Position numbers and translations under genes: made by a program
Notes under the pieces: generated by a model
Seen by the model: the letters and a program-made list of their open reading frames with translations, nothing else
Database searches by the model: none
What the model was told of the DNA's origin: nothing
Part shown: in pieces, positions 4,301 through 58,300 of the stretch
Layout: every line of letters begins with the position of its first letter
Numbering within the stretch: the stretch's first letter is position 1
NCBI RefSeq assembly: GCF_902459465.1
Contig: NC_047080.1
Span: forward strand, 5,270,001-5,334,000
Direction: 5' to 3'
From: Asterias rubens
Lineage: Eukaryota
Length of the DNA: 64,000 nucleotides

Positions 4301-7300
4301 GTGTTATTAGTCTTCTTACAAAGTGGTATGAAAGAATAAAGACCTTAGTCAAGTGCAAGTCAAGCAACCATCGTTTATCGCCTTAATTACTTCCTAGACT
4401 CATATCATTCAGAAAAAACATTTGATAATTGTTTCTTTAGAGGTGAGAAAATAATGTATTAGCTGTTGCAAACTGCTTCCCAACCAAAATAGTACTGTGC
4501 TCTACAGGTAAGTATGAGTGAAGTAGACGCAAAAGTTTTTAACGGCCTGACGTTTTGACCCTAGCAGAGTGTTCCTGTACGTGTTTCCATAAGAGGAGTG
4601 GTTTAGGGTTCACATCTCACCTTTGCCAATTTTGATGTCCAGTGCTGTACGGATGAGCGCCATGAGGGTGGTGGAGAAATGAACCGTCTTGTCTTCAGCG
4701 ACCGGCATGTTCATTCTTATTAGACGCTGTCGGATATGAGAAAAGAAATGAGTCAAATCTTTAAGACATTCTTAACTTAGTGATATGATGGAACAAGATT
4801 ATTTTATGACAGTGTTTTGCTCAGATACAAATCTGTGAGGGCAGAGATGGTTCTTGTGATTGATTTAGCTTAGTAGCGCACATTTGTTGCATACGCTGTA
4901 TACTCCCCAGGGAGCTGAGATGGTTTAAGGAATGAATTAAAAGGCCCAGTGACCAGGGATAATAATGTTGGAAGCGCTTTGTGATCCCCTTGGGTGTGTA
5001 AAGTGCTACAAACCGATTACTATTATTACTATCTGTAAGATTTGATCAAACTGTGGCTTGAGTGAAAATAGACCGATCCCATTCAGGTCTTCTCATTACT
5101 ATTACCCAGAATACAGGCAGGGAACTAGATCTTACCTTGTAAGCAATTCTGTAAGGACAGTTTCTTCCAAAACCGACAGGTGGCTCCATTGTTCTTAGCA
5201 TTTCATACATCTCTTTGTAATGTAATCGTCCACTGAAATCAAAAGTGTCAATCAAATCAGATCAAACCCAGAAAATCATGAAAATTGTTGAAATTCAAGC
5301 AACAGGATAAAATTAACAAGATTACAATTCACAAAAAAGTTTGGAACTGGTTTTCTAGAACAGAGTCACTGAACTAGTTTTACACGAATAAAGATAAAAG
5401 GAGATTTTTGATCAGAAAATGGCTTTTAAGACATCAAAACCTGCCTGCTGAACTGTGTTTTTTTAAATAAATTTATAGAATTTACTGACAAAATGTCAAT
5501 ATTGACAACATGGTCTGATTGATCAAGAACTTTGAAAGAATGTTGAAATCATGGAACAGTATTCATATAAAGAGTAGGATTTCTCTTTATCTGCGGAAAA
5601 TTACTGCATTGATACAATGTATCAACATGCAGAAAAAACACTGAATCTTGTGGGAAAACACATCGAATCTTGTGGGGAAAACACATCGTTTGATGACAGT
5701 TTTTTAACTTTTGGGGTTGAACAAAGAATTGACTAGAGTGGGATTCGAACCATTGACCTCCGGATTAACGTGCCGGCGCTCTACCAACTGAGCTATGTAG
5801 CCCTATGCTGGCGGTGTCCCTATTTTGTCAATATCTTTGTTTGGTGGTGACAGTCAGAAGCCATACAACCGTTAACTGCCGTGTAGCCAGGGATCACACC
5901 CAAATTACGATACAACCTGGGAAGCGGCAGCCAGGGGATCACCTTAAGGGGATGCGACTTTTTTGTTTCAGATATCAATATAAACCACAAGGGAAACTGA
6001 CTGGGTAAATCTTTTAAACTTGTTTACTTCCCTGGACTACTCCTGGTCAATATGTTTTATTGTCCGAAAGAAGATATAAAACGAAGATAAAAGTGTAAAG
6101 TTTCTGATTCCTGATACTTTGTTTGTCTTTGTATGGATTTACTTTAAAGGCACTGGACACTATTGGTAATTACTCAAAATAATTGTTAGCATAAAAACTT
6201 ACTTGGTAACGAGCAATGGAGAGCTGTTGAAAGTAAATAACATTGTGATAAACAGCTCCCTCTGAAGTAGCGTAGATTTCGAGAAAGAAGTAATTTCTCA
6301 CTAAAATATTTGAATTGAATTTGAAACCTCAGCTGAGGTCTCAAATTCAAGCATCTGAAAGCACACAACATTGTGTGACAAAGGTGTTTTTCTTCCATTA
6401 TTCTCTTGCAACTTCGACGACCAATTGAGCTCAAATTTTCACAGGTTTGTTCTTGTATGCATATTTTGAGATACACCAAGTGAGAAGACTGGTCTTTGAC
6501 AATTACCAAAGGTGTCCAGTGCCTTTATTGGGCAAGTTAATTTGGAGAAGGTTTATGCAGAGATTAGGAAGATGAAGAAAGGAAGATGACTTACGTTCCA
6601 ACTGGTTCTATCTCACCCCAGACTCGGACATACTCATCCAGGTGATGAGCTCCCAAGATAGAAGCGTCTCTCGTTAGATAATCAAAATTATCCATAATTA
6701 CAGCCACAAAGAGATTCAACATCTACAAATAAAGAGTGAGATGATTACAAAACTTGGAAATGTTTCTTCTTTCAATCAATCTATGTCAGCAAATATCAAG
6801 TAATAAACCAAGAGGGAAATTGACGTGGCAATGTTTATAGAACTTGGGGTTGAACAAAGACAAATTTACTCAAGTGGGATTTTGACCATTGAGCTCCACA
6901 TTATTGTTCCACCTGAGCTATCTAGCCCTATACTGGCAGTTTCCCTATTTTGTCAATATCTTTGTTTGGGTGCCAGTCTACCTGATTGTAACAAGTAGCA
7001 ATTTTTCCCCCAGAATTTCTGTATTCACTTTCTTTTTAGTAATCATTTTTTTTTACAATGATGTTCTGCATCATTATTTCATGCTGTCCTGTCAGGGAAA
7101 TTGTGTAAATAATTGAGAATGACATTTAATTTTGCTTAAAAAGTAAAACAAACGACAACAGATTTCCATTTCTTTGTGTATAAAACTTTGCGTTGCCAGC
7201 CTTCAGCACTTGCGCGATCAGGCAACAAACAAACTGGTCTATTGCCTCCTCCTACTTGCTTGGAGAATAATTTGATTAAGCATCTAAGATGTGACTTACA

Positions 7301-10300
7301 AGGAAAGAACAAAGGAAGATGAATGATACGAAGTAGAAGTAGGAGAAATCTGAGCCACATCCATTTAGTTCATCTTCAGTGTAGTTGGCTCCAAGACTGC
7401 CAACATCACAAGTAGAATGAGAATTACATGACAACATTATTAGCTGCCAACTCTCTCCGGTAGCACACCTGTGGGAAGTCAACCAAGGACCAGAAAAACC
7501 AAATGTCAAATTAAGAAAATAATAACAGTTGATACTACAGACTTGAGCGTTCTTCATCTTTAGCAAACTTTTTGTAAACACTTGGTTTTAAGTAAATCAC
7601 TGCACCCTCGTGTAAAAAATAAATTAAAAAGGAATCTGGCCAAACAAAGGAGCAGGCATTGTCGGATAGTTGATTGTATCTTTTTTAAAGAGAGATTTCC
7701 TTGTCTAATAAACTCTGAATAAGTTTTCATTCAAATCTCTTTCTTTGTCTTTGGTTTGACTTCCATTCGACCTGAATGCTTGCTTTTTCCTTTTTGCATA
7801 GCACATTGTATTTTGGTGTTTCGTGCAATTAAGACAATAGAATAAATAAATTTATTCCAAAAAATTGTTATATTATTATCACCAAATAAAATGACTTTAT
7901 AAAAGCAAATACAGATGGGGATGAAGAATTGAGACATATGGTAAACTAGGAATGGTTAATGGTAGAGTTGGTTAGTCCGAGAAGGTGTAACAGGGTAGGG
8001 GGTTTGGTTTTGGAGTTGGAGATGCGGGTGAGGTGTGCATGGGGGTGCTTTGGGTGCTGTTTATTTTGGGAGGCGATGAATGAGACTATACAATTGTTGC
8101 TGTGAATGTTGAGAGGGTGCAGTAAAGATGATAGTACCAGAAGGATATCACATGCATTATATATGGGTAGTATATAAAGGAAAAATTGGGTTACTTTGCA
8201 TTTATTTACATTGCTGCAAGCTTACTATTTATCTAAAACCTACAAATCGCTGAGCCAATGAATGGCTGACTAAGTAACTACTGACCAATCACAATGTGTT
8301 TGAATCAACACAAATATTGACTGTTGCTTCAACAGTATTCATCTAGCCATGGTGATTAGGGTTCATTAATGTCTTCATTTCATTGGTCAAAGAAACCAAT
8401 CAAATCAAGCGGGGCTGACCAATCAAATTGAAACCAACCAGAAAGCAACCAATCAGCTCACAGACATTACAACCAACCAATCAGAGTTGTTGTAGACCAA
8501 ACAAACACAAAAGACAAACACAACTGCGTTAAGTTAACAACAAGATATCCATCATGCAAATGAATATCAAATAATGGAAGCTTAATTTTGTACAGACCTT
8601 GTTACAAATAATGGCCTTCAGAACATACTAGTTACCGGTACACTTTTATCAAATAAATTAGCCCAGTTGTGAATATAACCAGACCTATAGTAAGTATTAG
8701 GTACACAATACACTCAATGGGAAGGTACACATTTGGTTATTACTCAAGACAAGTATAAACTTAAAAACTGACTTGGTAACGAGCATTGGAGAGCTGTTGA
8801 TAGTATAAAACTTTGTGGGAAACAACTCCCTCTGAAGTAACGTAGTTTTTGAGAAAGAGGTAATTTCTCACTAAAATATAAAAACACTTCTAGCTAGAAG
8901 ATTATTCCAATCTGAAAGCACAACAATTCATCCAACAAGGGTGTTTTTTCTGTCATCATTTTCTCGCAACTGCGATGATTAATTTAGCCCAAATTTCGAC
9001 AGGCTTGTGATTTTATGCTTATGATGAGATACACCAAGTGAGAAGACTGGTCTTTGACAATTACCAAACGATACAGTATACAATTTGTACACAAATTTGA
9101 CAGATGAATGCCTTTATATTGTCCAGAGACCAAAATAATTCTCGGAAATTATTTCAGACATTTATGTCTTGACTTGAAAAGACCATTTAACATAAAACAA
9201 TGCACAGAGACCTTAGCCTACAAACTATTATACTACTGCGTTGACCTAAGTCCAACCAGGGCAACATTTAGCCTACAAGTCTTTGTGATCATCACAAGCA
9301 TTTTTATACCTAGCCAGGGCTAAGAGCACAAAAAATAATTACAATAATTTGGGGGGCTTATCATCCTTACTCGCAGCTAAGTGCTGAATTGCGAAGGACG
9401 CGGCTACAACGTGTTCAAGAAGCAGGCATGCAAGCTGCCAGCCACATCAACCCATTATGACCACGGAGCACACCCAAGATCGAAAGTGTTTGATTTTTCC
9501 CCGAGGGAGGAAAACCGGATAGTCTGGAAAACCCTTGTGGCACAGCAGAGGACCAACGCACAACTCAACTCACATAATGGCCCTGGCCGGGAATCGAACC
9601 GGGGTCACCTTGGTGAGAGCGGAGCACTTTACACACAAGCCAACCATGCCAATCAATGTTTCATCCACTACATTCCTAAACAAATTTTGGACTGTAGTTT
9701 AGCTCAAGCTAGGTCAAACTAATTGAAACTTTGCACGGCGAAAGCATAACTAAGAGAGGTTTACGGGGAACACCATGTGAAAATCTCTTTTGAGTTGTGT
9801 TGGTTCTGAAAAGAACCGATGGTTAAGGACTCAACGCTTCGATCAGTGTACTCTGATCATCTTTGAGAGAAAGTAACTCAAAGCTAGACACACTTTGTAA
9901 TCCAGCAACCTCTTTTTACATTATGTTGCTGGTAAACTTCTCAACCATCTGGTAACAAAGTTTGTGAATGTTTCGCCGAGACACTACAATATTAAACTAT
10001 TTGTTGCTTTCACCCATGTACTGCATCTCTTTGGAACTCCTTGCCTGGTGGTTGTTTCCACCCCCCCCCCCCCCCCACCATCCTACATCTGGACTGTTTT
10101 AAGAGGAATATCAATTCCTGCCTCCAGCTCTCCTGAGTTATTTTCATGTTTAAATCATTTTTTGTTTTTGTAGTCCCTTACCTAGAGTGGTGTTTAGCCT
10201 TGTTTGGGGCGAACTTGCATAAACAAAAAAATTTAAAAAAATCTATATATTTTTGGTTTGCGATAACACAGGGGTGAGAGTCATTACTAACGAAAAAGTC

Positions 10301-13300
10301 TGAAACTTGAATACAAATTCAAAGGTTATGTTGAAATGATGCCATTTCTACCATTGGTAATCCCTAGGGTTATAAATTCCAAGGAGCTTTTGGAAACAGT
10401 ATCCAAAGCACTTGAGAAGTAGACCAATGAGCAGGGTTTCTTTGTTTGTGGAAAAAAGTATTGTCTGATTTTCTTCACCATGCCGACATAAAAAGTCTGA
10501 ATTCAGCCAAAAGTCTGAACAATCTCATCCCTGTAGTAACACCATGTGTGTATCTTACTTGCCAGGTAGAGTTTGTTCTTAGAGAACTGTCTTTCTTTAT
10601 TCCACTACCACAAAGTAGATTTATTGGATGTTCGGGAGACTTCTCAGTTCTAAAAAGAACTGTCCTGCTGTTTAACCACTACCTGGGCGGAAGGTGTAGA
10701 AAATTGGCTGGGACTACTACTTTAGCTTTTAGGATCGTGATTAACTGCACTACTGCGGAGTCAGTACTTGAATTGGTCGTGAAAAAGTTCTTGAAAAAAT
10801 CTAAGAAGCAACACTAACTAAATCAAGCTGCAAGGATTAGTAGCAGTTAGTCCGACTGTACACTAGGGTTGGAGTTACATGCATGCTACCTTATTTTTAC
10901 CTGAACAATAATAAAAGCGCGGTGATGAAATCATGAAAATGATTGTATCTCGTGATACCGGTGGAATCATCTATCCTGATTGTACCAAAAATCTGCGTAG
11001 CATGCAGAGTACCGATGAAAGGGGTTGGATATAGAAGCATGAGGGAAGGGTGAAATGGGGTAAAAAAAAGATGCAAAATGGAAAAGAAGAATAATTCATG
11101 AGATGGATATAAAGCAAAAGATGACAAAATGATCAGAAAGAAAATGGCTGCCATGAAGGATTGATTGACCTATTGCCATGGTTACCGAGGAGAAAAGGCT
11201 ATTTTAGATGCGACTGATGGAACTTTGCTGACGTGAGTCACAATGATGGGATAGTTAGAGAACTTGATCACTTAATACTTGATTCCTTATGTGGAAAAAA
11301 GTTGGAGAGAATTTTGAGAACTTTGATAGTTTTTATATTTGGTGATAATTTTGATAATTTTGAGAATTTACTTAGGAAATGTTAGATAATGATGTTTACT
11401 CTATCCCATGTTGTTTACATCACTCAATTTCAGGTTTTTGAATTTTACAAAGGGTTCGTGGGCATGAGGTTTTTTTTCCCTCCTTAGTAACCATAGCAAC
11501 AGATATATCCGGATCAATTCATGCATGACAAAGCGTGACGCTAAGTCAGTCTACCTGAACAGTAGTAGAAGTCCCATGAAGAAGTTGCTGAAGTTATTAT
11601 TACGATTAATGGCTTTGCCGTCGTCCGCTATGCTGATATTGCCGAAGATCTGAAACAAAATAAGTCAGTGACGACCCCCCCATGGGAACACAACAGGAAA
11701 GACAAAGTCACGGACCAGGTTCAGTTAGGTTTGTTAGTTAAAATAATACATGAAACAAATGGAAACATAACATACGCCTTTTACTTGTTGAATGACGACA
11801 TTTTGTTGTTGTTGTCACATAACTGAAAGCTTGATTTTCAAACGTTACCGTGACAAAAAAAGTTTATGGCCTGATGTTTTGACCCAAGTAGAGTCTTTCT
11901 CGAAGGCTAAATAACAACACAACATCATTCTTTTGGGTATGCTGCCAAAACATAGAATTTGAACTGCCTCTAGCTACCGGGCAACCTCGGTAGTCTAGTT
12001 GGTTAGACACTGCTCTAGAATTGAAAGGGTCGTGGGTTCGAATCCCACCTGAGTAACATGCCTGTGATATTTCTTCACAGGACTCAGGAAAGTACTGAGT
12101 ATACAGTTCTACATGTAACACACATCGGTGTATTGGTAAAAACCAAAATTAATGCTCCATCTTTGGTTTGTTTGTTTGTTTGTTTGTTTGTTTGTTTGTT
12201 TGTTTAAATGAGCTTCCCATCAAGGGAACTCGGCAACTCCCACAAAGGGATATAAACACCAAGTCTGTTTGATGTTAAAATCACTGTGCAAAGTGTCACT
12301 GCTCTAAAACTGATGAAGGAGCCCTATTTCATAGAGCTGCTTAAGCACAAGTAGCTAGGCATAAACAGAATTATGCTTACCAGAATTAGGTTACCAGCCA
12401 AACAACCATGTCACAAGTACAAATTGCGACTGGTATCCAGCTAGTTTCTGCTTAGCAGGAAACTGCTTAGCAATATTTTCTTTCCTAAGCAGCTTTATAA
12501 AATTGGGCCCAGGGAGCCCAAACCGGGGCTGGAGCCCAAACCGGGACGGGGAGCCCAAATTGGGCCCAAAGAGCCCAAGTTGGGCCCAAAGAGCCCAAGT
12601 TGGGCCCAAAGAGCCCAAGTTGGGCCCAAAGAGCCCAAGTTGGGTCCAAAGAGCCCAAACCGGGACCGGAGCCCAAGCCGAGGTTTAGGAAAGGTCCTTT
12701 GGATGTGATTGATAAAGAACCTACCTGCATGCCAATGATTGCATAGATGAAAAACAGCATGAATGTTAGAAGACAAACCCAAGGCAGCGACTGTAAAAGA
12801 ACAAAAACAATTTCAACATTTTACTTTTTACTGTTTACGCAACAACTAGTCCCTCTTATGGGAGTCAGGTTGGTGTAGTGGTTTCTTGCCGTGCCATGCA
12901 CCTCAATCCTACATGAGGCACTATGTGGATTGGGTTTTCAGTCCCTACCTGACTGCGTGGGTTTCCCTGGAATAATTCTCTGGGGGTTTTCCTCCCACAT
13001 CTTAAACTGAAATGTCTTCATTTTTTGTCTTCTCACCATGTCCATACGCTGAAAAGGCTTTGACAAGTATTAGTATAGATGTGGATGTAGATTTTGAGAG
13101 GCATTGTATGTACATGTAACTGTATGTTCAGTGTGCGGTCACACCATGTGTACATGTACATGTATATCTACTTTGCTGTGCAGATTTGTCCTTGATAACT
13201 CCTCTTCCTATTTGTTCTACTGTCGAGGAGTATGTTTCAGAATTCATCTGTTCTTTCAAATCATCACTCCTTTATAAGGAGTTCCGGACCACTCCCCTTT

Positions 13301-16300: not shown

Positions 16301-19300
16301 AATAATTGTCATGACCAGGATTTGAACCCACACCCACCAACATAGCTTGTATACACCTGCAACCTAGGACCTCCTTGTCCCTCTTTTGCAACAGCTCCCG
16401 TTGGTTTTGTACACGTTTTCCAACTGTGGACCTTTCCCGAACCGTGGACCCTATTGCCCTCTTTTGTTATGGGTCCTCGGTTTGAATAAGTATACATGTA
16501 CCTACCCACCCAGAATTGAGTCTGACACACATTAATTGCTTTGCTCTAGAATGCATTACGATATGTGAGCAGACTATTTGATCTCATTGTCAAAACACGC
16601 ATTTGAAAAAAAACAAAAAAACTTTTATATGATTTTTTTCAACAACAAAAGACATTTGTGAATGATATCCCACTAGTAATCAGACAGATAGACAGTAATA
16701 ATCCCTGGATTGTAATTTACATAAAAACAGAAAAAGAAATGAGGAATGATTATAGAACGCATCATTGCAATCACAACAAAGTCAATGTTGAGCATTAGTC
16801 AAACAGATGCTGAATATTTTTAGTTCGTGCTTTCTCTAGTTATTTTTCTCCAGAAAGAGGACACAATTTCCTTTTTAACCATCTCTTCAAAAGATTTTCA
16901 AGAAAGTTTTCAAGAATACTTTCTCAGCGTCAGCAGTCTACTAATGTTATGATGTAAAAGTGATGTAAAAGAATTTGTTGTGACTTTATACATGTGTATA
17001 TTTAAAGACACTGGACACTATTGGTAATTGTCAAAGACCAGTCTTCTCACTTGGTGTATCTCAACATATGCATAAAATAACAAACATGTGAAAATCTGAG
17101 CTCAATTGGTCGTTGGAGTTGCGAGATAATAATGAAAGAAAAACCACCCTTGTTATACATAGTTGTGTGCTTTCAGATGCTTGATTTCGAGTCCTCAAAA
17201 TCTAATTCTGAGGTCTCGAAATAAAATTCGTGGAAAACTACGTTACTTCAGAGGGAGCCGTTTCTCACAATGATTTATACTATCAACAGCTCTCCATTAC
17301 CCGTTACCAAGTAAGGTTTTATGCTAATAATTATTTTGAGTAACTACCAATAGTGTGCACTGCCTTTAAACTGGATCAAAGATTCAAATTTGTCAGCTCA
17401 GCAATAATAAGGTTCTTAACTGCAATTTCATTATGAAAAATGTGTATACAATTGATAAATAACCCAAAATCCATATATAATTATAATAGTTTTTCTTGCT
17501 TTCATTAACCAAACAATTTCTTTTGAGATGACTCTTGATCAACAACCTAAATAAACCAGAAGCTCCAAAAAAAAGCAAAACCACTTTGATAAAATGCAAT
17601 AACAACCTGATAGTCCTGAGCCGACAAATTGAACAACAGAAAAAGTAAAGTTTGAATGAGAATTAAATTTTGACAAATAAAACAATGTAGACCATACACA
17701 CAGCTTGATTGGTCACAAACATCAAAATCATCAAAAACAATGCCATGAACCTGCACACAAAATGAATTGTTCAAATATTTAAATGAAGAGCATCTCATGC
17801 ATATGCAACGATTTTATGCAAAGTAGGCTTGTTCATGCATCATCAGCCATTGAGCATGGGTCATGAGATTGGACATTTTCAAACACAAAGGTAAAGGGCA
17901 AATTTAGGTGACAATGGGTACATTTTTAAAAATCCATTGCATATTCAAATAACGTCCCATGTTTTTTTAAAGAACTTTTGAACCAAGTATGAAGAATTCT
18001 GTAAAATGCACATTCAATTTTGCCACAAAATGTGGTTATTCACATACTATTAAAAACAGTGTTATCAGTTGAACTCTGTTAAAAAAATTGTTTAGTTGAT
18101 GGAAAAATTGTTTAGTTGTAATTTCAAAACACATTACACCAATCCGGATAGGCAGTATGCCCCGCCCATCAAGGTGGGTGGAGCATAAATGATTTAATTT
18201 TAGGCGCTTTTTATTGGTCAAGGAAGGTTGGAATTGGAAAGGTAACCTGCATTCTTAGCTAAAAAAATTAGTCCACAGTTTAGAGATTGGACTTCTTGAC
18301 AACTTTCACCTCACAAAGAATCAAGATTCTGAAAGGTTTCCTTGAAAATCTACAAAAGACATATATGTTTCAAACTACATTGTGTATTTGGAAATTTGAT
18401 AGTATTTTTCTTATTACTACAGCTACAGAAATTGAAGTAGATGTCAGCATACTGCTTGCATGAGAAATTCAAATGAGTGGGTGTGGTTGATTGACAGTAT
18501 AAACTGGGTGTGGTCTTTTGCCAAATCCGGATTGGTTCATTCTAAAAATAGGGGTTAAAAAACTGAATTGATATACATGTAGATCTGTTTGTACCTTTGG
18601 CCCATAAGCAATGAGCTTAAGAACAGCTTCAATAGTGAAGAGCACCGTAAAGGCGATGTTGAGGTAAGCTAGAACATTAACGTACTCATCAGATGCTTTA
18701 TATTGCTGGGTGATTCAAAAAATTGGGGGAGATGGAATCGGGGGGGGGGGGGGGGGGGGGGAAATGGTAGAGGAGGATAGAGGAGGTGTTTCAAAGAAGA
18801 GAAAAAAGAAAATAATACACATTTGGATGATAATGATTGACAACATGCATGGGAAACTGAAAAGAGTTCATGTGTTTCAATTCCAAATTTCTGTCTGATA
18901 AAGATGCTCATGTTGATTTTAAACTACTGATAAAAGTACAGCGGCAAAAGAGTTTGCGTTTCATACTTATTTGAATATATTTCAAAAGGTCTTTACTGTT
19001 CAGGAGATAAACAATTTGAAACTGAAAAACATCTTCTCTTTTGATTTTTCAAAAAACGAATGATAGCATGTATACGTCATGCTAAACAACAATGACAACA
19101 ACAACAACGATGACAACAACAACAACAATGCCAGAAACAACGACTGACAGAGGCACCAAAGGATATTATAGTAGACTTGTGGACAAGTCGATAAATGTCT
19201 GTCGCGGCAATAGCGTTCCCACTCTCTCTGCGATTCCCGCAACACTGGCGATTTTCTCGCAAGACTGCTGGCCCCTGCGAGCCTACTGCTCTTGTGCTGT

Positions 19301-22300
19301 GCAGTCTCATAATTGGGAAGTAGTAATCGGCAGCCGGCAGCTCCGCGCTAGGGCAGTGATCTCGCGAGAGAAGTATTCAATCGCAGAAACCTGAATCATT
19401 ACACCACCACACCATGACTTGCGACACAGACCATTTGTTAACGACTTGTCCACAAGACTAATACAATAGCTAAGATGGACGGTGGAAGAGCATAGCCCAG
19501 GAGGATGATGATGCTGCTGATGATTTTGGTGATTACACTCAGTAGAAGGTAGATCTTGCTGAGTATCTTACCCTTGGTCCAAACCCAATTAGCTTGAGGA
19601 TTGCTTCGATTGTGAAGAGGACTGTGAACGCTATGTTCAAATACTTCAAAGTGTCCGTGTAGGTAGCCTCAGCCTTATATGTCTGAGGATAGGGGGAGGC
19701 ACCGGGAGTGCCCATTGTTAGTCAAATTAGTAACTGGCTGTGTTCCGAATTGGCAGCTACATGCTACGGCTATGGCTAGATGTCCACCCCAACATGTGCT
19801 GAAGTATGGCACGCACTTAGCAATGACCGTAGCCGTAGATGTAGCCACTTATTCGGATACAGCTCTTGTTTTTTATGGAAAGGGTTAATCTACAATACAC
19901 TGATCCTGCAGTAGGCTGTAAGAGTGTTTCTTTATATGCAACTCGTGCAGAATATTGTCGCTGGATAATTGAGTAATTCGCGTCATGACGTCTGTGCTCA
20001 GCGGCTACAATTTGTTCATTCTTTGTAAATTGCTTGATTCCAATGTTCGACATGTGGAGGGGCTTAGTGATTAGCTTGTTCAATCAAAACCAACCAACCC
20101 CAGGTCATTAGAGTTTAGTGCTAGCATTTCAAAAGATTGATGTTTTGCAATAAATGGAACCTAATCGGTTCAAATCTCAAGAAAAAAAAGAAGAAAAAAA
20201 AAAAAATTCAATGTGTAATAAATGTTCGTAGTATGACTGGTACTCAGCCCTACACTAAAGGAACTGTGTCATCATGATCAACGCAGGTTTGTGGCTGTAC
20301 ATGGGATGATGAATTCTCATCCGGTTACAAGACGCACATGCGCTCTCCATAGATGCAACTTGGAGTTAGGGCGCCCTGGTGCTGTATCTGGCTGAGAGTT
20401 CATAATTCCATGTACATCAACAGGCTTTGGCTCAATTTCATAGAGCTGCTAAGCACAACAATTTGCTCAGCATGAAATTTCTTCCTTGATAAAAACAGGG
20501 TTACTAAACATTTCCATTTGTTGCATATTGCTTGTTACTCGTATTCAGCTGTCGTTTGCTTATCCTGAAAATCATGCAGAAGTTTGGTGTGCTTAGCAGA
20601 TGTGCTTAGCAGACCTATGACATTGGGCCCTGATTTGATTATGATGACACAACACCTTTAAGGATCAGTGTATTTCTAGCGATGCTGTCTTTATACAAAG
20701 CACTCAAATAGAATAAAGAATTGAATACAATAACAGGTGTCGTCATCGCTCATCTACCCCATTAGGAATCCTTGGTATCGCCATTCTCAAAATGGGCTCA
20801 AAAGGAACTTTTTTGTTGATTTTGATGCTATTTGAATGTCTCCTGATTGATTGAATGGTTTTTCTATTGGTGGACATATCAATGGCTTCAGCTCCTTAAG
20901 TGGTCCAAATTGATATTGATAGCTTATGTGAGCAGTGTTGTGTCTGATTGGCAACCATAACTTCGAGAAAATGAGTTGCAGCTTCAGAAAAGTGTCCAAA
21001 TTAGAATAGTTTAATTGAATTGTGAAGGGTTGATTCCAATTGTTACCAGAGAAGAACATTGGTTGCAATGCAAGTATCAAACTTGAAATAGTTCAATTGA
21101 GTTTTAAAGTAACAATTTTGGTTGGCAACCATACATGTAGCTAGCAGAAAATGAGTTATGTCAGAAAACTACTACCGGATACACATTGGAATAATTTAAG
21201 TGCATTTTGAAGGGTCGATTCTTATTGGTGTCTATAACTCCATGAAAATTGGTTGCAACATTAGACAAGTATCCCAAGTGTTATGAGTGATAACGACCCT
21301 GTGCATTGTTATAATTGCTAGACTACTCTATTATTCCATTCTTCATCATGGTTAACGCCATCTTGGTTGTTTCTCATTCAAGTCATTGTAAGGCCGTGCC
21401 GAAACGGCAACTTCGGCTAAAGCTGGGGCTAGATCGCGTTCGTCTGCCTATTCTTCAACACTGGCAGACGCGTTGATCTAGCCGTAGCTGTAGCCGAAGT
21501 CACGGTTTTGGACACAGCCTAACTGAGCTTGAGGTTGATGAGAAATTAGTCTGGCTACTTCTACTGTATTATAATGTAAGTATCAGTATTGAAGATTCGC
21601 TATAGAGATCATGGGTAGACAGGGAATATGTCATAAGGTTTATCGCGATTCAGAACCCCAATGCGTTGTGGGTAGGCGGTTGGGGCATTTGCGACCGCGC
21701 AGTATGTTGTCATGCCAACATGCGCACGCATGGCCAATATCTTTGTGTGGGTTCAACAGCACCCTCTCTTGATATTTTGCCATTTGCGATAAACCTTATG
21801 ATGGCGTTATCATGATGAAGGTTTGGACTACGGACTTCAATAACTCATCTAGCATCTCTGCCACAATATTAAGAAATAAAAAGCAGAAATTAAGACATGT
21901 CCGTCAGTTGAAGATATGTCCATTATGTCAAGTCCTGTTGGAGAGGGTTGAGGTGAGGGTGGGGTTAGGGTCAAGATCAGGGTCACAGTAATTTAACAGT
22001 TGGGAAGTAAAAGAAGGTCAGTCAATCAGATAATCAATAAGGTATTATTAGCTTGCATCGGAAAAAAACAAATTGCACTACGATCAATAATATGTGTAAA
22101 AAAACAAACCACAATCAATACTTTATCAATTATTGACTAAAAAATCCCCAATTAATAGTCTGTAAATAGTTGTCAGTCAATAATCGATTCAACAATGAAC
22201 AGCTTATCAATATTCAGTCAATAATCAGTTTAGCATAGAACAGCTATCAAACTATCAAACTATTGATCAATAGTCAATTCTTCAGTAGTCAAGTCAACAA

Positions 22301-55300: not shown

Positions 55301-58300
55301 TAGTGTCCAGTGCCTTTAAAACCATCAAAACAGAACAACCAAGTTTAAAAAAAAAGACCTATGTCAGGCCTGAGATTACACGGTGGGGACTGGCCTCTGA
55401 TCTTTCAATGGAAGCGCATTTTGCAAAACGAGAATTGCCTTGCCCAAAGAGGCCAATCCGGAGGCAACGTGTCCGTTAAATACCACAAGTTCCAAACTGG
55501 TACCCAGTCATGTGTACCAACCATGCACCTACTTCAGAGGGAGCCGTTTCTCACAATGTTTTTTACTATAAACAGCTTTCCATTGCTCATTACCAACTTA
55601 TTTTTTATGCTAACAATTTATTTGAGTAATTATCAATAGAATCCAGTGCCAATTTTAAAATCATAGAATTTCGAGAAATCCTATTTCCTGGATTTTCACC
55701 AACAATGTATCCTTGATGCACTATAAGAAAATCTAAAAGCAAAAATATTTAAGAAATACAACAATTTACGCTGAAATCTGTGCAAGACTTACCTGTGCTT
55801 TTGCCGTTTTCATCGGCAATAAAGCATGTATTGTGGAATTTACCCTGGAAGAATTCCATGCCAGTGATGGCAAAGATGATAATGACAAATAAAATGAGGA
55901 GACCAATTTGAAGGAGGGGAGCCATGGCTTTAAGGATAGCTTTAAGGACAACTTGCAAACCTGAAAAGAAAGAAGACAATTAATAATCACTGCCCAGAAG
56001 ATTCGTGTTTACATGATGAAAGTTTCAGGTTTGTTTTTATTAGAGCTTATTGATGAAACATTCTGTAGACACAAATAGTTGTTTACAGAACAAACAATAC
56101 TTTTAAAAAATGTTCTAACGTAAAAGTGAAAACCCATTTGTAAAAATGTCAAACCTTGAGCTTTGGATTGGTTCAGAATAGTTTTGAAAATGAAATGAAT
56201 TAAGTTTATACAATAAATATATTGCTATATAATTTCTGGTTGAAATCCCGCTTTAGTAGTGTCGTGTTTTGTTCACCCCCAAATATTTAAAGTTTACCCA
56301 GTGGGCCATAGATCCCCCTGTGGTTAATTACTTGAAAATAATCACATTTTAACACGGAATTATTACGTACAAAATTAGTGATTAAAGTTTTAACCATTGA
56401 GAACAAAAATAGTTAAAAGTGTTAATTATATAAATTTTCCTTTTTCCATTTATATACAAAACAATGTGCTTCTCCTGGTGCTTGCTTCATCACGTCGTTA
56501 TGGTTACTGCAAGTCACAACTTACTTGGGATGCCTGATACTAATTTCAGGGGTCGAAGTACTCTGATTGCACGAAGGGTTCGCAGATCTGGGGCCGAACT
56601 GCTTCCCTCTGTAGTCTCTGCTAGACCTCCTATGAATGATATAAATCTGCAGCGACACCAAGAGGAGTTGGGGAGGGGGGAGACAAAGGAGGGGGTGATT
56701 AGTTTGGAGGTCCATGGCTGGGAAACAGATTGTTATGTTACTTGTTTGTGTTGTTTGTTTTGAAACGTAAAACAAAAAGGAATTCATGCAAGATATCTGC
56801 ACTTGTCAACATTTAAAGTTAGTTTGTTTAGTCTGTACTTAATTTACCAAAATATGTAAATAGAGGTTTAAAAAGGTATTGTGTGTCATAGTTTTTTCTG
56901 TCAAAGTTTGATTGATTGATTGATTGGTACTTGTTAGTTGGTCTTCTGAAACTTCCATGGGGAAATTGACAAGTAGGTCAGGAATGTCAGCTGAATACAG
57001 AGTTTACTTATACTTAGCCTTTAGTCAAGGCGCATGCGGCACACCGGATAGCACGCACAGCCCCAAAAATGTAACGCACGAAAAAAGACTAACACTGCGA
57101 GCAGCGAAGCGCCTTTACCAACTCGTTTTGGGGGCCTTATGTTTTTCTTTACATTTGCCAACGATTTTGGTGGGAGAAAATGTAATGCATAATGCATTAG
57201 CGTGGTGAGTTGCTGGCCAATAAGAAGCCACAATTACTTGCATGACGTCACAAGAACGTTTGATGCAAATTCGTTACATTTTCTCCCACCAAAATCGTTG
57301 GCAAATGTAAAGAAAAACATAAGGCCCCCAAAACGAGTTGGTAAAGGCGCTTCGCGGCTCCGCCGCTCGCGGTGATAGTCTTTTTTCGTGCGTTACATTT
57401 TTGGGGTTGTGCGTGCCATCAGGTGTGCTGCGTGCGCCTTGACTAAAGGCTAACTTGTACTGGGAAAACAGCCCAAAACTGTTACAGTATTTTCACAAGA
57501 TAGACCAATCCATTCCTATTTAGCGTTTAGCGTTTTAGAAAAGCGGGTCAGCATCTCTGGCCGTAGCATTCACGAGCAGACACTGACCCCTGAATGAAAC
57601 CGAGAAAAGATTCATGCATGAATAGTTTCTCAGGTTCAAGTGTTCTTATGGATTTCTAATCAACAGCTGAGCATTTCAGACGAAATAGTTATTAAGGTAT
57701 AGCAATTAAAGCAATCGCACAACATTGGTAAACAGTATTGTCCAAAGGCCCACACTTCGTGTATCACAACTTACATAAAATAACAAAATCTGTGAAAATT
57801 TAGGCTCAATCGATCATCGGAGTTGGGAGAAAATAATGGGAAACCCACCCTTGTTTCCGCATGTTTCGCCGTGTCATGACATGTGTTTAAAATAAATCTG
57901 TTATTCTCAATTTCGAGAATTGATTTAATTGTTGTTTTCTAAAAAAATAAAGCATTATTTCAAGGGAAGTCTTCCACCATCACCTTCTGTAAACCCTGTA
58001 AGTTATTTGTAAATCTGTGAACTTTTAATTTTTGTTCTGTTCAGAAAATGTCCAATGGCTTTAAGGTGTTTTGGTAAAAAAAAATAATGATCACAAAGTT
58101 GATACATCGTTAAAACAATTTGACAGTTTTACACAAAAGTTATGATACCCGGTACAACATTTTAAGAATTTAACAGTTTTTGGTTTTACTAGTCGAAAAA
58201 CAACAATACAACTAAAGACGATAAACACACAATAAAGACACTAACTGACAACAACTTCAATGTACCTAAGAAACAGTGTCATAGTTGCTATAATTATAAC

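Follow-up and report, generated by a model that had tools for sequence, protein, structure and literature searches.

Mutually exclusive exons beside the pore of a four-domain channel are known from the T-type channel of Lymnaea, in which Cav3 exons 12a and 12b encode alternative S5-P1 turrets of domain II next to an unchanged filter, and the swap alters the ion preference of the channel (PMC9694082, PMC4436565). The Lymnaea turrets are long, cysteine-rich loops, with one lysine as the determinant. NALCN has a mutually exclusive pore exon (15a/15b) in echinoderms, hemichordates, molluscs, and annelids; here it is the filter residue itself that changes, giving EEEE versus EKEE (PMC4436565). Tandem-duplicated, frame-compatible pairs are also known as IS4A/B and I-IIA/B of Drosophila cac, 37a/37b of vertebrate Cav2, and 8/8a, 21/22, and 31/32 of Cav1.2 (PMC11828482, PMC9741552). 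For Drosophila cacophony, two exclusive pairs have been described, at IS4 and in the I-II loop (PMC11828482, PMC12370356), and a survey that leaves the location of the third unstated counts three exclusive events in this gene (PMC9741552). A single Cav2 gene serves fast transmitter release in most invertebrates, so that channel diversity must come through splicing, and the exclusive exons described for Cav2 affect the voltage sensor, the I-II loop, and the C-terminus.

The stretch of DNA analyzed here (“the window”; 64,000 nt of Asterias rubens contig NC_047080.1, positions 5,270,001 to 5,334,000) carries the greater part of a four-domain calcium channel gene on its minus strand, from IS2 (window position ~61000) to the IQ exon (~2760). 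The filter motifs TMEGW, TGEDW, TGEGW, and TGESW, which together constitute an EEEE filter, were read directly from the window, with the IQ tail on the same strand. A Littorina Cav2 protein matches the window in 29 collinear segments with a mean identity of 62% (tblastn), and the I-II linker exon, which encodes the beta-subunit binding helix, scores 71-76 bits against Cav2.2/Cav2.1, 63 bits against Cav2.3, and at most 44 bits against Cav1. On the basis of the collinear Littorina match and the Cav2-type linker score, the starfish gene encodes a Cav2-type (N/P/Q/R-type, cacophony-type) alpha1 subunit, the identity also proposed in the first-pass annotation of the locus.

The same gene also has exon pairs at IS4 and IVS2. 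The IS4 pair (window 56517-58669) has a counterpart in arthropods: the Daphnia magna isoforms X9 and X8 (P0401/P0406) differ in IS4 as well as in the turret. Exons 30a and 30b (window 18472-19721) end in ...KLIGFGPR and ...KLIAYGPK, respectively, and in the Anopheles stephensi Cav2 isoforms P0445 and P0448 the IVS1-S2/S2 segment ends in ...KIIGFG versus ...KLIAYG. This type-specific signature, common to starfish and A. stephensi, suggests that the 30a/30b pair is orthologous across bilaterians.

The exons of interest here lie in domain IV, and their arrangement in the window (in order of transcription; a slash marks an exon-intron border) is as follows.

12725..12790, minus strand: exon 33 (66 nt, phase 0 to 0), which encodes IVS5 and ends in ...IIGMQ; constant exon upstream of the pair, recognized from its sequence, its splice sites, and an RNA joint to exon 34a.

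11555..11649, minus strand: exon 34a (95 nt); acceptor ...ttttgtttcag/, donor CAG/gtagac; reaches two thirds of the way into pore helix P1; RNA joints seen.

10993..11554, minus strand: intron between 34a and 34b (562 nt).

10901..10992, minus strand: exon 34b (92 nt); acceptor ...gctacgcag/, donor CAG/gtaaaa; intact.

7300..7468, minus strand: exon 35 (169 nt), encoding CATGESW... with the domain IV filter Glu, P2, and the start of IVS6; constant exon downstream of the pair.

Each of the exons 34a and 34b covers the final three residues of IVS5, the turret (the extracellular S5-P1 loop, ECL-IV), and the greater part of the domain IV pore helix P1. The first-pass annotation had described a duplicated domain IV turret exon, and this description holds: the two are tandem homologs, both with AG/GT borders, placed between the IVS5 exon and the filter exon, and their peptides are exactly as quoted there. 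No third copy was found in the window or in the 417.6 Mb assembly, in which 34a and 34b are the sole matches to each other. The polypyrimidine tract of 34b is weaker than that of 34a.

Both copies start in phase 0, are 3n+2 nt in length, and end two bases into an Arg codon that is completed by the first G of exon 35. When spliced in silico, 33+34a+35 and 33+34b+35 keep an open frame throughout, 33+34a+34b+35 meets a stop after seven codons (RFLVQSG), and 33+35 meets a stop as well. The earlier claim that double inclusion causes a frameshift is thereby confirmed, and, because both exons are 3n+2 nt long, only messages with exactly one of the two would be productive. The 562-nt intron is long enough for splicing; thus, exclusivity would be imposed by the reading frame, and not by steric hindrance, with double or null messages running into an early stop and presumably being removed by nonsense-mediated decay.

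In its position beside an unchanged filter the pair resembles Lymnaea Cav3 12a/12b, which had been named as its precedent in the first-pass annotation, correctly so according to the published account (PMC9694082). The starfish pair differs in that it belongs to domain IV, has a short, cysteine-free loop in which the sole Lys is in 34a, and involves a swap that also spans most of P1. The NALCN 15a/15b swap alters the filter, whereas 34a and 34b leave it untouched. The cac, vertebrate Cav2, and Cav1.2 pairs listed above are likewise tandem-duplicated and frame-compatible, but none of these described Cav pairs sits in the domain IV S5-P1 segment. Exchange of a pore module would constitute a different lever from those described, because the outer vestibule and pore helix change while the filter is kept. 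The two exons offer a natural sequence pair for probing the domain IV outer loop in Cav2 permeation, block, and toxin binding.

The peptides of 34a and 34b are identical at 18 of 31 residues, and 37 of 93 nucleotides differ; 11 of the identical residues are encoded by different codons. In a neutral simulation in which 37 random substitutions were scattered over 34a, none of 200,000 trials reached 18 identities (the maximum was 17, attained in seven trials). The dN between 34a and 34b is 0.30, and synonymous sites are saturated. From the simulations, the dN, and the saturation of synonymous sites, it follows that the duplication is old and that both copies have since been mostly under protein-level constraint, as expected of purifying selection on each. 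The open frame of 34b counts for little by itself, because 48% of the neutral trials retained one.

Comparison with 94 distinct 31-residue Cav turret peptides identified six invariant positions, all of which are kept by 34b. At two near-invariant positions 34b departs from the others: His16 is replaced by Tyr, which is unique among the 94 peptides, and Asn18 of the NNF motif is replaced by His, for which there is one other case. That case, the sole other Asn-to-His change in NNF, is in the upstream turret exon of an animal contig (L044:3803-3895), which reads NRNNHF. Residues 1620-1650 of human Cav2.2 give a gap-free alignment with 34b, at a score slightly higher than that with 34a. The 13 changed residues of 34b relative to 34a include the gain of two His and one Asp and the loss of a Lys and two sequons, with Y-N-H-F-H-D in 34b corresponding to N-N-N-F-S-N in 34a. 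The motifs reported earlier are therefore present: two N-x-S sequons (NIS and NFS) together with NNF in 34a, and no sequon but His-x-His-Asp (H-F-H-D) in 34b.

Two of five sampled 34b 31-mers were found in runs labelled with three other organisms, and for the surrounding 5.7 kb these same three organisms were below the threshold of a twentieth of the sampled words. This hints that 34b may be conserved across species above the level of the intron. Every sampled 34b word occurs in DNA-type runs that carry two species labels. When the 90-residue open frame surrounding 34b was compared with proteins, no match resulted, but with candidates restricted to 50-157 residues this says little.

The same site is occupied by a pair in other animals. 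In the Daphnia magna genome, turret exons of 92 and 95 nt lie in tandem, the second with a GC donor, and an old gene model read through both. The RefSeq isoforms X7 and X6 of D. magna, and X3 and X4 of D. pulex, have the turret segment as their sole difference; those of Linepithema humile (X1/X2), Colletes latitarsis (X12/X15), and Anopheles stephensi (X3/X2) carry one turret type or the other. A search with exon 35 led to an animal contig (L003) in which two turret exons, 92 and 104 nt long, follow each other in tandem between homologs of exon 33 and exon 35. A metagenome scan yielded animal contigs with pairs, every pair being flanked by AG...GT/GC and 3n+2 nt long; with L003 and the Daphnia contig L006 included, these contigs constitute seven sequence groups (L003/8/9; Daphnia L006/84; L041-43; L045/47/50-52; L044; L065/76/77/82/86; L083).

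The arthropod Cav2 turret types, A and B, match the starfish pair in the exon affected (after ...IIGMQ and before CATGE), in phase, and in 3n+2 length, and the arthropod isoforms use one or the other; in the genomic DNA of Daphnia and of the contig groups, the two exons are in tandem between the same constant exons, as in the starfish. They differ in that a GC donor, absent from 34a and 34b, is conserved in the arthropod B exon, and in that neither the A nor the B type has the His-x-His-Asp of starfish 34b. In a tree of 28 turret peptides (31 columns), both starfish exons are on long, unplaced branches, and the groupings of the arthropod A and B types have weak support. The GC donor reads CAG/GCAAGT and is conserved on the downstream (B-type) exon at L006:19618-19625 and L003:1936-1943, as well as in L008, L009, and L084; the L065 group has a GC donor on the upstream turret exon instead. 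In L083 (4720-4975) the turret exons are 70 nt apart, and steric hindrance alone could enforce exclusivity there; L018 apparently shares this layout, truncated by the end of the contig.

Single turret types were found in other lineages. The genomic locus of Schistosoma bovis has a single turret exon at this site, and the Drosophila protein models retrieved have a single turret type. Given these, and given that the cacophony papers describe two other pairs, pairs at this site have apparently been lost in some lineages. The S. bovis contig (L087:65739-71163) also shows the IVS5 exon in five identical copies over the 5.4 kb upstream of the turret exon, which reflect either a tandem repeat or an artefact of the assembly. 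A third turret type is seen in mosquito “alpha-1-like” proteins; these probably belong to a paralogous gene and do not represent isoforms, and they were excluded as evidence. The matches listed for the Littorina and Daphnia proteins were from molluscs, vertebrates, and arthropods only, with no echinoderm genomic orthologs among them, and a search of representative proteins with exon 35 returned mostly genomic ORF fragments and no echinoderm.

The literature searched contained no paper on a Cav2 domain IV turret pair, the arthropod pair included, and the presence of such a pair in starfish, crustaceans, insects, and further animals thus appears to be undescribed in that literature. Because the same two-exon design is found in starfish, crustaceans, insects, and further animal contigs, the turret site is either very old or has arisen several times over, and in both cases functional importance is likely.

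Use of the two starfish exons was assessed by mapping three raw RNA runs of the same species label, together with the contig set X1, onto window positions 7200-12900. The joint between exons 33 and 34a (12725/11649) is represented by three reads in X15 and by a contig of depth 311 in X1, and the joint between 34a and 35 (11555/7468) by a single read in X15, another in X16, and, in X1, a contig of 4856 nt and depth 190. The first-pass annotation had named a lack of 34b transcripts as the finding that would count against it: none were seen in these four runs, the bin of 34b having zero depth in all three raw runs and in X1; the power of the raw runs, which have five 34a junction reads in total, is very low. 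Sampled 34b words were also absent from X1, X2, X5, and X19, which are guessed to be RNA runs, and no joint between 34a and 34b was reported in the mapped runs. Exon 34a is thus the used, default form, and 34b is essentially absent from X1.

A contig from the metagenome collection (L007) that derives from a related starfish matches exon 35 with 91% identity; no other hit was echinoderm-like. It is transcript-like, with a 34a-type exon spliced to exon 35 and on through the IQ exon, and so represents a second species that uses the 34a type. In this contig (L007:460-1660) the intron upstream of the 34a-type exon is retained, and all downstream introns have been removed, which suggests that intron 33 is spliced late.

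We consider it rather probable (approximately 60%) that 34a and 34b form a genuine mutually exclusive pair in which 34b is rare or tissue-restricted. The main rival, which is possible but clearly less probable, is that 34b is a disused relic: the pair would once have been spliced alternatively, or would have been duplicated only briefly, with 34a alone used now and 34b persisting as an undecayed pseudo-exon. Zero 34b depth in four runs is in keeping with a relic, most of all in X1, where contigs across the 34a joints have depths of 190-311, as is the absence of sampled 34b words from X1, X2, X5, and X19; five junction reads for 34a, however, leave the raw runs with little power to detect 34b. 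The related starfish contig carries the 34a type, S. bovis has one turret exon, and the Drosophila models have one type, all of which speaks for a relic. A relic would also account for the departures of 34b at two near-invariant positions, and its open frame is of a kind that survives in nearly half of the neutral simulations, but the pattern of substitutions is that of long protein-level constraint, the splice sites and all invariant residues of 34b are intact, and its 31-mers persist in the runs of other species where intron words mostly do not.

Two further readings carry far less weight. If 34b were a poison exon, its joint inclusion with 34a would introduce a premature stop and lower channel output, with no second protein being made; the stop after seven codons is compatible with such a role, as is the established use of unproductive splicing in regulation. 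Conservation of the protein would be unnecessary in a poison exon, but synonymous change in 34b has left the invariant residues in place, the mapped RNA gave no joint between 34a and 34b, and the equivalent exons of Daphnia give alternative full-length isoforms, so that we regard this role as very improbable. That the resemblance of 34b to 34a reflects a frame left open by chance, or a fault of assembly, is effectively refuted by the match between the copies (tblastn within the window, E=2e-6), by their identical phase and borders, and by the DNA-type runs of two species labels that contain every sampled 34b word; nothing beyond the missing 34b RNA speaks for it.

As a mutually exclusive pair, 34a and 34b would be tandem-duplicated exons that exchange the outer rim of the pore ahead of a constant exon with the filter glutamate, and 34b would be a rare form limited to some cell type or stage. 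Ziconotide is contacted in human Cav2.2 by D1628 and D1629, and the contacts of alpha2delta are confined to the repeat I-III loops (PMC10761187). The segment encoded by 34a/34b includes the positions equivalent to D1628/D1629; from these contacts, altered blocker access or vestibule charge would be structurally reasonable, and altered alpha2delta binding would not. The swap is predicted to change the charge of the outer vestibule and the packing of P1, and may in consequence alter conductance, block by divalents or protons, binding of pore blockers, or filter-linked inactivation, with the EEEE filter unchanged. The first-pass annotation had placed the His-x-His-Asp of 34b next to the filter, which is true of the linear sequence, in which it precedes the filter Glu by 16 residues, but not in space, where it lies at the outer, N-terminal end of P1. 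Effects of the swap on selectivity and on Zn2+/H+ block are purely conjectural. A glycosylation switch between 34a and 34b, also suggested earlier, is doubtful: sequon NIS of 34a lies three residues after IVS5 and sequon NFS is in the helix cap, and sequons so near a membrane helix are usually unused.

A broader reading, which we regard as unlikely, would place the turret pair in an ancient bilaterian set of exclusive Cav2 modules, together with the IS4 and IVS2 pairs common to starfish and arthropods; the set would have been lost in vertebrates and, at the turret site, in Drosophila, with 34b as the form that bears His-x-His-Asp at the pore mouth. If so, certain cells would gain a distinct proton/Zn2+ block, conductance, or blocker sensitivity through this motif.

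The introns around the pair were also inspected for structures that might influence the splice choice. One candidate pair of arms was identified.

11328..11349, minus strand: candidate looping arm, complementary at 19 of 22 positions to 7875-7896.

7875..7896, minus strand: candidate partner arm, which pairs with 11328-11349.

Base pairing between the two arms would set 34b aside in a loop of the pre-mRNA and favor 34a-35 splicing. As a docking/selector structure it was rejected, the 22-nt arm pair not being significant; since chance alone would give approximately 0.15 such pairs in these two introns, we treat it as a lead only.

Several intronic stretches of the window (8728-9109, 10256-10828, and 11784-12547) have RNA depths from tens to more than 1000, with many loose ends and strand-switching joints; these represent expressed high-copy repeats (a tRNA-like SINE and other elements) that are outside the channel message. 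Intron 33 also contains, 75-165 nt downstream of the exon 33 donor (window 12560-12649), a tandem repeat of a GC-rich, self-complementary 20-nt unit (TTGGGCCCAAAGAGCCCAAG), which might fold into hairpins close to the site of the regulated splice choice.
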